From: Basidiobolus meristosporus CBS 931.73 | Lineage: Eukaryota > Fungi > Basidiobolomycota | Direction: 5' to 3' | DNA length: 64,000 nucleotides | Assembly (NCBI GenBank): GCA_002104905.1 | Contig: MCFE01000021.1 | Span: 62,001-126,000, forward strand | In this document: piece after piece, positions 1-19,889 of the stretch | Numbering within the stretch: position 1 is the first letter of the stretch | How the letters are laid out: every line of letters begins with the position of its first letter | Notes under the pieces: generated by a model | Databases searched by the model: none | What the model saw: the letters and a program-made list of their open reading frames with translations, nothing else | Told to the model about the DNA's origin: nothing | Program-made: the position numbers and the translations under genes

Positions 1-533
1 AAACCGGTGAGTTCTCGAGAAGTAAGCCCCTTCAATAATTGCAGTAGCGTTCGTGGAGGTTGCTGAAAGGTTCTAGTTTTGGCCGGCAATTCATCCTCCT
101 CCATCAATTCACGCACCCGTTTTGAGTGTAGGCCAAAAGTCAGCTTAGGGTCGGAAACAAAAGTCAAGATTGGGAATAGATGACGACTTGATTCCAAAAT
201 TTTTATCTTCTCCGTGGTCGATTGAGTACTCTTGAGACGAGTCTGGAGTTCAAGCAACTGCGCTAAATCAACATCATTCGATTTTAAAACCTCTGAGAAT
301 TCCGAGGTCTTATAAATGCGAGGATTTACTTCGCACTTTCTCCGAGTGGAAAATCCTCTGTGGGCCAAAATAGTAGCATTGTGGTTATCCCTAAGAGTGA
401 AAGGACGAGTAGCTAAAAGAGGACAACCCGAGGGCCTCGGTAGCTTAGGTTTACTGATCTCAGTACTGAGAGTTGGGGTGTATCTGAAAAGCTTATCCAA
501 CTGATGTACCAAGGAAGTTATCCGAGTTTTCAT
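1..533 (-). CDS. 5' part of a probable ATP-dependent DNA ligase (T4 gp30-like N-terminal DNA-binding domain) with a mitochondrial-type presequence; runs off the window edge
   Basis: Absent from the ORF track because there is no stop in the window. Open frame from ATG at 533 to base 1: MKTRITSLVHQLDKLFRY...AHRGFST...LQTRLKSTQSTTEKIKILESS..LFPILTFVSDPKLTFGL...TLLQLLKGLTSRELTG. This matches the recalled T4 ligase pattern L.S..ST..K..ILE ... TL..ML...LATRKLTG. The catalytic KxDG motif lies outside the window. Confidence 0.6.
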   Translation of the reverse strand, partial: MKTRITSLVHQLDKLFRYTPTLSTEISKPKLPRPSGCPLLATRPFTLRDNHNATILAHRGFSTRRKCEVNPRIYKTSEFSEVLKSNDVDLAQLLELQTRLKSTQSTTEKIKILESSRHLFPILTFVSDPKLTFGLHSKRVRELMEEDELPAKTRTFQQPPRTLLQLLKGLTSRELTG

Positions 534-938: not shown

Positions 939-2431
939 ATGACAGTGCTAAATGGTTCCGAGAAGCGTTCCTTGTCAGAGGAGGAGCAGAGTTGCAAAAA
1001 AGCCAAGTCTGTTTCCAACACCTTCAACTCTCGCTATTACGAGCCAGATTTCGTAAGCAACTTCAATCGCGGCTTCACTACTCGCATCCCTTTTCAGGAT
1101 GACCCCGAGAAGTCCCAAGCTTATACTCTTGGCTACCCCTTCCGAGCAGGCGCTTTGAGTGACGTTTTTGATCCCGATTTTCTGAAAGAAGTGAAGAAGG
1201 AGCTCCTCAATGAAGTCTTCTATCACAAGTCCAACGACCTGTACGAATTCTATCAATCGGAGGATTTGAAGCTCACCAAGAAACCCTACCTTTCAGCCTT
1301 GAGATCAGCCATCTTCAGTCCTGAATTTGTAAACCTCATGACTCGCTTAACCGGGATAAAGCTCAACTCCACTATAGATCTCGCTGGACAACGTTACAGT
1401 GATAAATCCTTTTTGTTGTGTCACGATGACGACGTCCGCAACGAGAATGAGGGGCGTCGCATAGCCTTTATTATCTACTTGGTTCCCGAGGATTGGTGCA
1501 AGGAAGATGGAGGATTGCTCAGTTTGTATTCCACGTATGTATCCCAGTTATTTTGAGGCCGAAGCATATTCGCAGTCGCTAAATCTTCCAATTCACTAGT
1601 GATATGCAAGACCAGCCCGCAGAGGTAATTCATTCCATTATCCCCAAATGGAACTCGGTTGCCTTCTTCCAGGTTGGAACCACCTCTTTCCATGAAGTGA
1701 CTGAAATCCTCACCGCGTCCAAAGACCGTGTTTCTATCACTGGCTGGTTCCATGGATCTGTTGATGATAATGCGGAAATTCCACTTCTAGAATATCAGCT
1801 GCTGAAACCTGAGCCTTCTCAATCAATTGAGGCATGGATCAACCCTAGATATCTCAACGAAGATGCCAGTAAACAGATCTCGGATATATTTTTGGAGCAG
1901 TCTAGTGTTGAGCTCCAGAAATTCTTGCGTCCTGAGGTGTACGATGAAGTCCTTAAAGCCTTATCCGATGCTTCTTGGTCCCGTTCGGTTGGTCCTGCCC
2001 ATGCTCGTCGTTACAGACGCATTGATTTTGATAATACTCCCAGAGCCGCACTCCTTCAATCCTTGCAAACATTCCTTCAGTCCAAGGAGTTCAGTCAATT
2101 CATTTGTAAGCTTACTAATCTTGAGCTTATCCATGTTTCCTGTGAAACACGCGCTTTTGGAAAGAGTGAATACACAATGTGTAACGACCAGGCACTTGAA
2201 AGAGAAGGCCTAGATGTAGTTCTTTCATTGATAGACAATGAATGGAATGAGGAATGGGGTGGTGCTACACACTACGTCGCCGAAGACGAAAATCTTTTGA
2301 CTTTGTGGCCCACAAAAAACACCCTTTCACTAGTTCTGCGAGATGAAGGAACCATGAGATTTGTACGCTACATCAATCACCACGCACAAATGGAGAGACG
2401 TGAAATGTCTTTAATTTTCACCGAGAATTGA
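939..2431 (+). CDS. TPA1: OGFOD1/Tpa1/Ofd1 prolyl hydroxylase (2OG-Fe(II) oxygenase plus degenerate C-terminal domain)
   Basis: LLCHDDD (HxD), RRIAFIIYLV, FHEV (distal His), RVSITGWFH. One GT-AG intron at 1535-1599 joins the two ORFs in frame. Confidence 0.9.
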
Positions 2432-6851: not shown

Positions 6852-8048
6852 TTAGGGCTCCCATCCCAGGTGCTTTCTTTGTAAAACTGAACAGGTTGAC
6901 TGGCTGCGCGCTCTTCCTTCACAGGACTCTTTGTGGGTAAAAGGTGGTGCTGGCGGACTATACTGGGGAACTGGAGGCTGTGGTGGTAGTGAACGCCACG
7001 AGTAGGATTTCGAGCGGAAGCGCGAATGAGGAGGGGCGGATTTTGTGGATATACGACGATGTAGATCAACTTCAGGTTTGGACTCTGGTATGCTGTATAG
7101 ACAGGATGTTCTGTTTCCTGCCAGTTGATTCTGATATCCAAAATTTGAAATATTAGATTTAATTGTGGTGAACCATAGTTGAAGTTCTTGCTCAGACTCA
7201 AATTGCAAGTGCCATGACTGTGTATTCTCTTTGCAAGATGGTGTGGTGATCTGAAGTATACTTCGTCTATTCGAAAATCGGTCGAGAATTTCTACTTCGG
7301 TGTCTGGCATTATGACCAGTGCGCTTTCACAGCTGGTTGTTGGTGAACAGTTCTTGAAGCGGAGCAGCCGAAATTGGGTTAATATGAAATAGCGACGTTT
7401 CCAGATATGGTGTGTCAAGAACGTCGAGTTATATCTACAAGCCCAGCTCGCCAATAATGCTAATGACGCTGCTTTCTGAAAGGTCATCTGTGTACTATCA
7501 GCAGTAAGGGATACTGATAGTGAACCTCGCAGTAAAGGTAGTGTTGTTATCACGGTTGCTTTGTCCTTTTTGATAAAAGAGCCGCCATTGACGGGTATCG
7601 GGGCTCCGGATACCTGTGAAAATACCGCCGATAAATATTTAAGCTTTGACTGCTTTTCGGGTTCGTATGCTTTTTCAAGACACGTTTCAAGCCCTTTTAA
7701 GAGATGGAGAACACGCGAAGACATTTGAGGACAGCCCAACGACATATCATTGGTTTTCGATATTTCTGTGTTTTCAGTGAATATGTCAGCTTCGTTCCTT
7801 TTTGTCGTAGATTTGCGGTTTGTCTCAATTTTTTGCTGTTGCAATATGCGACTAAGGCTATCACGCATGAACTCCAACTCGTGAACATAGTCGAAACTAA
7901 GCAAGTGTTGTTTGGGTAGGAATTTGTCGTTGATTGTCTGATCTACATCATCAATTGGATGAATAATACAGTCGTCGTTTGCATAGTGGTGAGCTTTCAA
8001 TTCACCAAGCGCCAACGGGTTTGTGATTATTGAAACGGGTGCTGCCAT
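6852..8048 (-). CDS. PH-domain protein with proline-rich C-terminus, single exon
   Basis: 398-aa ORF with WKRRYFILTQFRLLRFK ... WHLQFESEQELQLWFTTIK (PH strands and terminal helix) and a PPQPPVPQYSPPAPP tail. Confidence 0.75.
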   Translation of the reverse strand: MAAPVSIITNPLALGELKAHHYANDDCIIHPIDDVDQTINDKFLPKQHLLSFDYVHELEFMRDSLSRILQQQKIETNRKSTTKRNEADIFTENTEISKTNDMSLGCPQMSSRVLHLLKGLETCLEKAYEPEKQSKLKYLSAVFSQVSGAPIPVNGGSFIKKDKATVITTLPLLRGSLSVSLTADSTQMTFQKAASLALLASWACRYNSTFLTHHIWKRRYFILTQFRLLRFKNCSPTTSCESALVIMPDTEVEILDRFSNRRSILQITTPSCKENTQSWHLQFESEQELQLWFTTIKSNISNFGYQNQLAGNRTSCLYSIPESKPEVDLHRRISTKSAPPHSRFRSKSYSWRSLPPQPPVPQYSPPAPPFTHKESCEGRARSQSTCSVLQRKHLGWEP

Positions 8049-19058: not shown

Positions 19059-19889
19059 TAGAATATATGGAATTAAGATGTATAGTATGTGACGGGGGAG
19101 TTTTAACGAGATAGAAAGCTACTGTTTCTAAGAGGGTCAAGGTTGGTCGTATTTTCAATAGAGTAGTCAAAGAAAGGGATTGATAGAGGGGTTAAATCAA
19201 GTGGAAATTACGGACCACGCTTTACAAATCTAATATGGTCGGAGTAAAAAAGCAGTACCAATTATTGCGTCAAATGGAAATGCTCAAACCAATAAGACAG
19301 CACCGGTAAGTGATTGGATATGGCAGTATCTATTAATGTTGATGCTATAGATTTAAATCAATCAGTAGTCTTTCCATGCCCATCATTCAACAAAGTCATA
19401 GGAAACATATTCCTAACAAAGTAGCTAAGGGCTTCCAAAACTAGATGCCAAGATTCAGATTGTTTATACACCGCATAGCACATGTTCAGGGTCTCTGCAT
19501 TGTACCGTATATATATTAAATTAGAATTTCTACACCTTCTCTAGACTGTTCTGCAGAAAATCGTGAATGATACATACAAACTCCCTACCGACGTTTATGC
19601 TACACAGATGAATGCAAAAGAACTTGGCTGATAAAGTACTTGTTGGTTGATGATTGGTGTAATAAGGGCATATAGCTGGCTGATCGTTAGTCAGATAGAC
19701 TAGCCAATACTGAACTTGCTTAATTCTGAAGCAGTTTAAACCTGAAGACATGAAGGAATTTGTTAACTTGTTTTATTCATGTTACCATGTTAATCTTTGA
19801 TTTGTCTAACAAAACTGCTAAATTCCATGGACTTTGAAGGCTCGAGCTCAATTTTGCATAACCACGCTGTGCCAACTTCGTAAGTGTGG

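Follow-up and report, generated by a model that had tools for sequence, protein, structure and literature searches.

A T4-type DNA ligase gene of Basidiobolus with a candidate mitochondrial presequence

The DNA analysed here (the window) is a stretch of 64,000 nucleotides of Basidiobolus meristosporus CBS 931.73 (assembly GCA_002104905.1, contig MCFE01000021.1, positions 62,001 to 126,000), at whose left edge, on the minus strand (533..3), a stop-free frame of 177 codons begins with an ATG and runs off the window; read in the frame set from base 700, the same stretch contains stops throughout. The remainder of the gene was recovered from the 236-kb contig, which was located by an exact match to the intronless PH-domain gene of the window (6855-8048); that gene with 10 kb on either side was taken as locus L001, in which a window position p corresponds to coordinate 10001 + (8048 - p). 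In L001 the frame extends to an open reading frame of 558 uninterrupted codons (L001 17516-19192, with the stop at 19190-19192), which encodes an ATP-dependent DNA ligase of the type of phage T4. The deposited model of this gene has 262 amino acids (L001 18404-19192) and starts at Met297, so that it comprises neither the N-terminal extension nor the DNA-binding domain nor K257, the catalytic lysine, and therefore the 177-codon frame looked unannotated. In the record of Basidiobolus ranarum, the ligase is annotated at its full length of 563 amino acids.

When the 558-residue protein was scanned against Pfam, it carried DNA_ligase_A_M (PF01068; residues 232-449, E 1.5e-17, 64.4 bits against a cut-off of 26.2) and DNA_ligase_OB_2 (PF14743; residues 476-535, E 6.4e-8, 32.9 bits against a cut-off of 28). 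The domains of the Lig1/3/4 type, PF04675 (DNA_ligase_A_N) and PF04679 (DNA_ligase_A_C), were both absent at E values up to 1, which rules out a relationship with those ligases. Among the PHROGs, a single family was matched, phrog_114 “ATP-dependent DNA ligase” (residues 70-549, E 4.9e-66), which is also matched by T4 gp30 (NC_000866) at 4.8e-170 and by the B. ranarum ortholog at 4.9e-67. In an alignment of 55 family sequences (A2), motif I reads K257-L-D-G-V-R262, with K257, D259, G260 and R262 invariant, and the other invariant columns (D323-G324-E325, F364-D365, E427-G428, R432, K447, K449, R543 and K548) fall in motifs III, IIIa, IV, V and VI, with motif VI lying in the stretch S541-L-R-F-P545...K548.

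The A2 profile and T4 gp30 were aligned by hhalign with a probability of 99.7% (E 5.6e-26), from residue 94 onward against gp30 3-440, with residues 94-235 opposite gp30 3-140 and K257 opposite the motif-I lysine of gp30. Within this alignment, residues 94-116 (L-K-S-T-Q-S-T-T-E-K-I-K-I-L-E) are paired with gp30 3-25 (I-A-S-I-G-S-T-K-Q-K-Q-A-I-L-E), and L-T-S-R-E-L-T-G with L-A-T-R-K-L-T-G of gp30; BLASTP alone also paired residue 170 with gp30 residue 76. Of the sequences with solved structures, those found by phmmer in the PDB were the ligase E 4D05 (residues 376-535, E 1.7e-10, the best), Pmar-Lig 6RAS (120-549, E 6.6e-10) and the T4 ligase 6DT1 (169-329). The AlphaFold2 model built on A2 (mean predicted local distance difference test (pLDDT) 80.9) begins with a helix (residues 2-17), is disordered over 18-72 and folds into three domains from residue 76, with helices between residues 76 and 220. 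Foldseek placed the T4 ligase 6DT1 first for this model (E 1.9e-27), then Pmar-Lig and the ligase of a Rhizobium phage, and archaeal and human ligases after these; the Lig1/3/4 structures came below the T4, Pmar and Chlorella virus ligases, and the alignments to 6DT1 and 6RAS span 483-491 columns. The best fold matches in the ESM Atlas were clusters of tailed-phage proteins (residues 85-557, template modelling score 0.86 by the matched model). Judged by its domains, motifs and predicted fold, the protein is a complete and intact three-domain ATP-dependent DNA ligase of the T4/Pmar type, with a small helical DNA-binding domain, an adenylation domain holding K257 and an OB-2 domain, and it is probably enzymatically active.

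The 177-residue fragment is far less telling by itself. It had no match in Pfam, NCBIfam or the PDB sequences, and tblastn against 50,697 phage records found no ligase with it. In a phmmer search of 1.84 billion representative proteins, the only meaningful match was the metagenomic protein P0001 (E 3.1e-5, residues 94-177 against P0001 273-354), the second match, the repeat protein P0002, being regarded as spurious; this library of representatives at 50% identity missed the B. ranarum ortholog, which is present in the 90% collection, an apparent gap in the library. The resemblance to T4 is convincing only once the remainder of the gene is recovered. The preliminary description, made from the window alone, had proposed an unannotated 177-codon start of a T4-type ligase unlike Lig1 and Lig4, and it held up well: the open frame agrees with the translation and the deposited record, both alignments to the N-terminus of gp30 that it had given were reproduced by hhalign, and the KxDG motif and OB-fold to be sought left of the window were found there (KLDGVR at K257, and PF14743). 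The adenylation domain expected downstream is likewise present above the cut-off (PF01068), the best phage family (PHROG 114) includes gp30 itself, and Pfam reported neither PF04675 nor PF04679.

The best database match of the protein is B. ranarum KAK9722727.1 (563 amino acids, 74% identity over 100% of the length), and the B. ranarum locus has the same order of genes as B. meristosporus, Ofd1-ligase-Cch1, the last being a Cch1-type channel gene that lies downstream of the ligase and outside the window. In B. ranarum (L008 8001-9747, JASJQH010006941.1) the ligase gene has a spliceosomal intron of 55 bp, which separates the E-Y-E-G-K-R from the S-R-N-L-L-K codons and lies between motifs IV and V, and B. 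meristosporus has no intron at this position; an intron has been gained or lost in a phage-type gene between two species of Basidiobolus. The GC content of the ligase frame is 44.6% compared to 44% in the neighbouring genes, the codon usage is likewise the same, and another sample of the same study gave DNA contigs that are identical over the part covered, the locus being present in no RNA run. Between the two species, synonymous sites are saturated (proportion of synonymous differences, pS, 0.67-0.94), with a nonsynonymous divergence (dN) of about 0.12 for residues 62-558, and residues 62-296 are 75-84% identical (dN about 0.12-0.17). By these rates, the mature protein is under strong purifying selection throughout, also in the part left out of the deposited model.

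After B. ranarum, the next 119 of the best 120 matches are metagenomic proteins of about 406-472 amino acids (P0004-P0122), which are 33-39% identical (31% for one) and align from residue 86-90 or so to the end. The contigs of two of them (L005 and L006; 292 kb and 173 kb) carry dense small genes on the same strand and phage-family content, with genes for an exonuclease, a homing endonuclease, nicotinamide mononucleotide (NMN)-adenylyltransferase/NUDIX proteins of nicotinamide adenine dinucleotide (NAD) salvage, a radical S-adenosylmethionine (SAM) protein and pyrimidine-dimer excision. Members of this clade are only about 31-33% identical to the ligases of cultured phages, which in turn reach at most 29% identity with the Basidiobolus ligase. 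The scan of prokaryotic genomes gave only three loci, in metagenome-assembled genomes (MAGs) of Firmicutes, at 26-29% identity, and therefore no close bacterial donor was found. P0001, of 698 amino acids, carries a 2C_adapt domain at the N-terminus, the beginning of the T4-type DNA-binding domain twice in tandem (approx. 137-179 and 269-354) and a ligase OB-2 domain, and its best solved relative is Pmar-Lig; it is encoded on an AT-rich 7.8-kb contig (L009 4156-6252, ENA ERZ23491429), with a gene GC content of 20% and adjoining RNase III and MscL genes, and by these features looks like a giant-virus gene.

In a quick maximum likelihood tree (62 rows, LG+G4, rooted on T4), the long-stemmed Basidiobolus pair falls with the metagenomic proteins and P0001 inside a clade supported at 99% by the Shimodaira–Hasegawa-like approximate likelihood ratio test (SH-aLRT), while the Bacillus-group phages, the Firmicutes MAGs and T4 fall outside of it. 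The simplest reading of the tree and the matches would be one horizontal acquisition from a phage-like source (a phage, a bacterial prophage or a giant virus) before B. meristosporus and B. ranarum split. A 60-member cluster of Basidiomycota (representative of 594 amino acids, PF01068 + PF14743) was the top language-model neighbour in the ESM Atlas (0.97); it may be the mostly fungal ligase group discussed below, and if its members were orthologs, the age of the gene and its spread among fungi would be greater than this acquisition implies.

The N-terminal extension is specific to Basidiobolus (about 61-66 residues), as residues 1 to about 85 have no counterpart in any of the 53 non-Basidiobolus sequences of A2, and with residues 1-235 as the query, B. 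ranarum was the only match (66% identical over 1-235), the search of the ESM Atlas with the same residues giving only small viral proteins of no clear relevance. Residues 1-61 hold 10 Arg/Lys (6 R, 4 K) against 3 acidic residues (2 D, 1 E), with a net charge of +7, 12 Ser/Thr and 9 Leu, and 4.9% acidic residues compared to 13.3% in the mature part; the extension of B. ranarum has 10 basic and 2 acidic residues (net +8), so the extensions of both species contain 3-5% acidic residues and the mature parts 13%. In sequence, the two extensions are only 24% identical, with insertions and deletions, compared to at least 75% identity from F-S-T-R-R-K onward. What they share is the first five residues (M-K-T-R-I), a Q-L-D-[K/R]-φ-φ segment (L-D-K-L-F in B. 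meristosporus, L-D-R-I-L in B. ranarum) with the φ-x-x-φ-φ pattern of the TOM20 type, and an R-3 motif exactly at the boundary of conservation, R-G-F|S-T versus R-F-F|S-T, the B. meristosporus extension ending in H-R-G-F before S-T-R-R-K. The helix predicted at residues 2-17 (block pLDDT 78 and 63) contains the maximum hydrophobic moment of 0.74 (residues 7-17), a value reached by 69 of the 2000 shuffles. There is no in-frame Met after the start and before residue 144, and therefore the extension is present on every translated molecule. The preliminary description had pointed to the surplus of basic over acidic residues and to an R-3 processing-type motif at residue 61; the counts agree, and the motif is present and kept in B. 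ranarum, cleavage at it being putative. Taken together, these rule-of-thumb features suggest a matrix-targeting presequence that would be cleaved by the processing peptidase at the R-3 site.

To put these observations together, a gene from a phage-like or bacterial source would have entered the lineage before the two species of Basidiobolus split, and it has since been domesticated, as its host-like composition, fixed gene order, the intron in B. ranarum and the strong purifying selection indicate. The extension of about 61-66 residues may have been gained during this domestication and would most likely act as a cleavable mitochondrial presequence, and the imported ligase would then seal nicks in mitochondrial DNA (mtDNA). 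We lean modestly towards this explanation as a whole, a domesticated phage-type ligase with a mitochondrial presequence. It is the mitochondrial location, above all, that we infer, import being somewhat probable from the features of the extension, and we put at about an even chance that Basidiobolus maintains its mtDNA with a dedicated ligase from a phage-like source.

Several points weigh against this explanation. Basic, hydroxyl-rich disordered N-termini are also found on nuclear proteins, and the hydrophobic moment is only moderately unusual among the shuffles. The nature of the metagenomic clade rests on two contigs only, and the Basidiobolus pair, on a long branch (1.16 changes per site), takes no firm position inside the clade that would point to a donor. 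If the deposited model starting at Met297 were the true transcript, the product would be without the catalytic lysine. In addition, ligase E, the kind of horizontally acquired ligase that has been studied in eukaryotes to date, functions in the repair of nuclear DNA (PMC10665377).

The same domesticated ligase could accordingly be an extra DNA-repair enzyme of the nucleus, with the extension as a disordered basic tail for nuclear import or protein interaction. DNA damage is likely in soil and in animal guts, the habitats of Basidiobolus, and the extension is rich in basic residues and predicted to be disordered over 18-72. Moreover, horizontally acquired ligases with PF01068 + PF14743 are radiation-induced and improve damage tolerance in eukaryotes, including fungi (PMC10665377). 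However, there is no clustered K/R motif of the nuclear-localisation type, Pfam found no PBZ or other repair-recruitment domain in the protein, and the depletion of acidic residues is confined to the extension. The features that have been kept are those to be expected of a presequence (a predicted amphipathic helix at the very N-terminus, φ-x-x-φ-φ, and R-x-F|S-T exactly where conservation begins), and we consider a nuclear role possible but doubtful.

It is very improbable that the gene is a decaying or repurposed relic, whose real product would be the 262-residue protein from Met297, without the catalytic lysine and unable to ligate, with the upstream frame open by chance or serving as a 5' leader. 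The deposited annotation of GCA_002104905.1, which covers only L001 18404-19192, speaks for it; however, residues 62-296 are conserved despite the saturated synonymous sites, as untranslated sequence would not be, the 558-codon frame retains every catalytic motif, the B. ranarum record carries the full-length protein, and 558 open codons at 44.6% GC are far beyond chance length. Contamination with DNA of a phage or bacterium, or a viral insertion of recent date in the assembly, is refuted by the synteny and the intron and deserves practically no credence: although the closest relatives outside Basidiobolus sit on phage-like contigs, these are only 35-39% identical to the Basidiobolus ligase, which is host-like in GC and codon use and is flanked within the 236-kb contig by the Ofd1 and cullin genes and, at its other end, by the Cch1 channel gene, all of them eukaryotic and intron-bearing, in an arrangement found again, together with an intron in the ligase, in an independently assembled second species.

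Of the known ligases, T4 gp30 (6DT1) shares with the Basidiobolus protein the three-domain layout and membership in PHROG 114 and is its best fold match, although it is only 23% identical and the Basidiobolus gene stands in a fungal nuclear genome; the Basidiobolus protein also has an N-terminal addition of 85-90 residues (extension and linker) seen in no phage relative, and is without the insertions in the adenylation domain of gp30. Pmar-Lig (6RAR/6RAS/6RAU) is the only solved structure that aligns by sequence from the DNA-binding domain to the C-terminus (120-549), and the second-best fold match, with the same pared-down DNA-binding domain of seven helices (PMC7470946); unlike the Basidiobolus enzyme, it is an accessory ligase of a bacterium, with about 430 amino acids and no extension, and it scored 41 bits compared to 245 bits for the metagenomic clade. 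That clade, together with P0001, contains the closest relatives outside Basidiobolus, aligned over the whole mature protein and joined with it in the common clade of the tree, and none of them has the N-terminal extension.

The job of sealing nicks in mtDNA would be the same as that of an isoform of Cdc9/Lig1 in yeast and of Lig3 in animals. Both reach mitochondria by an N-terminal presequence, and their nuclear and mitochondrial forms are made from two in-frame start codons. In the Basidiobolus gene, unlike these, only one ATG before residue 144 could serve as the start, so that no separate nuclear form would arise from a downstream ATG, and the protein has no Lig1/3/4 N or C domains. The distribution of Lig3 is summarised in PMC4488670.

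A precedent for a prokaryote-type ligase kept by eukaryotes, including fungi, is ligase E, which in bdelloid rotifers serves radiation and desiccation repair and whose Mortierella counterpart is radiation-induced (PMC10665377). The eukaryotic forms (AvLigE of Adineta vaga, MvLigE of Mortierella) and the bacterial 4D05 have the PF01068 + PF14743 core in common with the Basidiobolus protein, but ligase E is a minimal two-domain enzyme without a helical DNA-binding domain, and its eukaryotic forms carry PBZ-type additions and function in nuclear repair. Membership in this group is ruled out by the helical DNA-binding domain (AlphaFold2, hhalign), with no PBZ or other added domain in Pfam and the match to 4D05 limited to 376-535, and no Basidiobolus sequence appears in the supplementary lists of PMC10665377. 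The mitochondrial ligases of kinetoplastids, LIG k-alpha and k-beta (ligase K), also have the PF01068 + PF14743 core and are reported to be related to ligase E (PMC10665377); likened by description only, they show from a different eukaryotic lineage that a dedicated mitochondrial ligase can have a core other than that of Lig1/Lig3. Finally, a similarity network contains a mostly fungal group of ligases (NT-OB_2) linked to WGR-ligases of delta-proteobacteria and Planctomycetes (Williamson and Leiros 2020, PMC7470946). By description, its members resemble the Basidiobolus ligase in having PF01068 + PF14743 and no Pfam-annotated DNA-binding domain, and differ in being linked to WGR-ligases and not of the T4 type; none of them is among the best 120 sequence matches, which are all Basidiobolus or metagenomic. 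What sets the Basidiobolus enzyme apart from ligase E, ligase K and the NT-OB_2 group is the T4/Pmar helical DNA-binding domain, the grouping with phage-like sequences and the presequence-like extension.

Horizontally acquired ligases as such are already known, and the new element here is a horizontally acquired eukaryotic ligase of the T4 type with a probable organellar address; in our literature searches, we found neither a T4-type ligase of a fungus nor a phage-type ligase of fungal mitochondria described before. The mtDNA ligase has been identified in only a few eukaryotic lineages and differs between them, and if the proposed location is true, the sealing of mitochondrial nicks would have been solved independently once more in Basidiobolus, in addition to the Lig1/Cdc9 isoforms, Lig3 and kinetoplastid ligase K. 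The mtDNA machinery would also have another phage-derived part, acquired so recently that the sequence itself shows how a foreign gene gained a presequence. In this early-diverging fungus, the protein offers a concrete candidate that can readily be tested, as a complete T4-type enzyme with an obligatory extension whose boundary, probable cleavage site and conserved import features are visible from the comparison of two species, and the steps from a foreign to a host gene are on view in its host-like composition, the intron in one species, the fixed synteny and the new targeting segment. If the protein were nuclear, fungi would have two kinds of repair ligase acquired by horizontal transfer, this one and ligase E. 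The truncated public model of B. meristosporus hides the catalytic lysine, so that the gene looks like a fragment in databases, and a compact T4-type ligase adapted to a eukaryote could be of interest to enzyme engineers.

The coordinates of the ligase gene, its parts and its neighbours are collected in Table 1.

Table 1. Features of the ligase gene and of the adjoining part of the window (window coordinates unless L001 is stated).
Feature	Position	Strand	Basis
Ligase gene, 5' part, codons 1-177 of the intronless 558-codon gene	3..533	-	Translation, recovered contig, Pfam, PHROG 114
Ligase codons 178-558	L001 18047-19192, left of the window		Contig MCFE01000021.1
Residues 1-61, N-terminal extension, candidate mitochondrial presequence ending R-G-F|S-T	351..533	-	Composition, B. 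ranarum alignment, AlphaFold2
Residues 2-17, predicted amphipathic helix with L-D-K-L-F	483..530	-	AlphaFold2, hydrophobic moment, alignment
Residues 62-89, linker, 75% identical within Basidiobolus, no counterpart in phage relatives	267..350	-	Alignments; dN/dS approx. 0.08
Residues 90-177, first part of the helical DNA-binding domain (whole domain approx. 90-235)	3..266	-	hhalign to gp30, phmmer to 6RAS, P0001 match, A2, Atlas fold
Intergenic spacer, 405 bp, shared with the divergent Ofd1/Tpa1-like 2-oxoglutarate (2OG) oxygenase gene (ATG at 939)	534..938		Gene table, sequence
Ofd1/Tpa1-like 2OG oxygenase, one short intron near 1557-1603	939-2431	+	
Cullin gene, several introns	2796 to approx. 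6190	-	
PH-domain protein, 398 amino acids, intronless	6852-8048	-	

The spacer between the divergent ligase and oxygenase genes is presumed to be a bidirectional promoter region.

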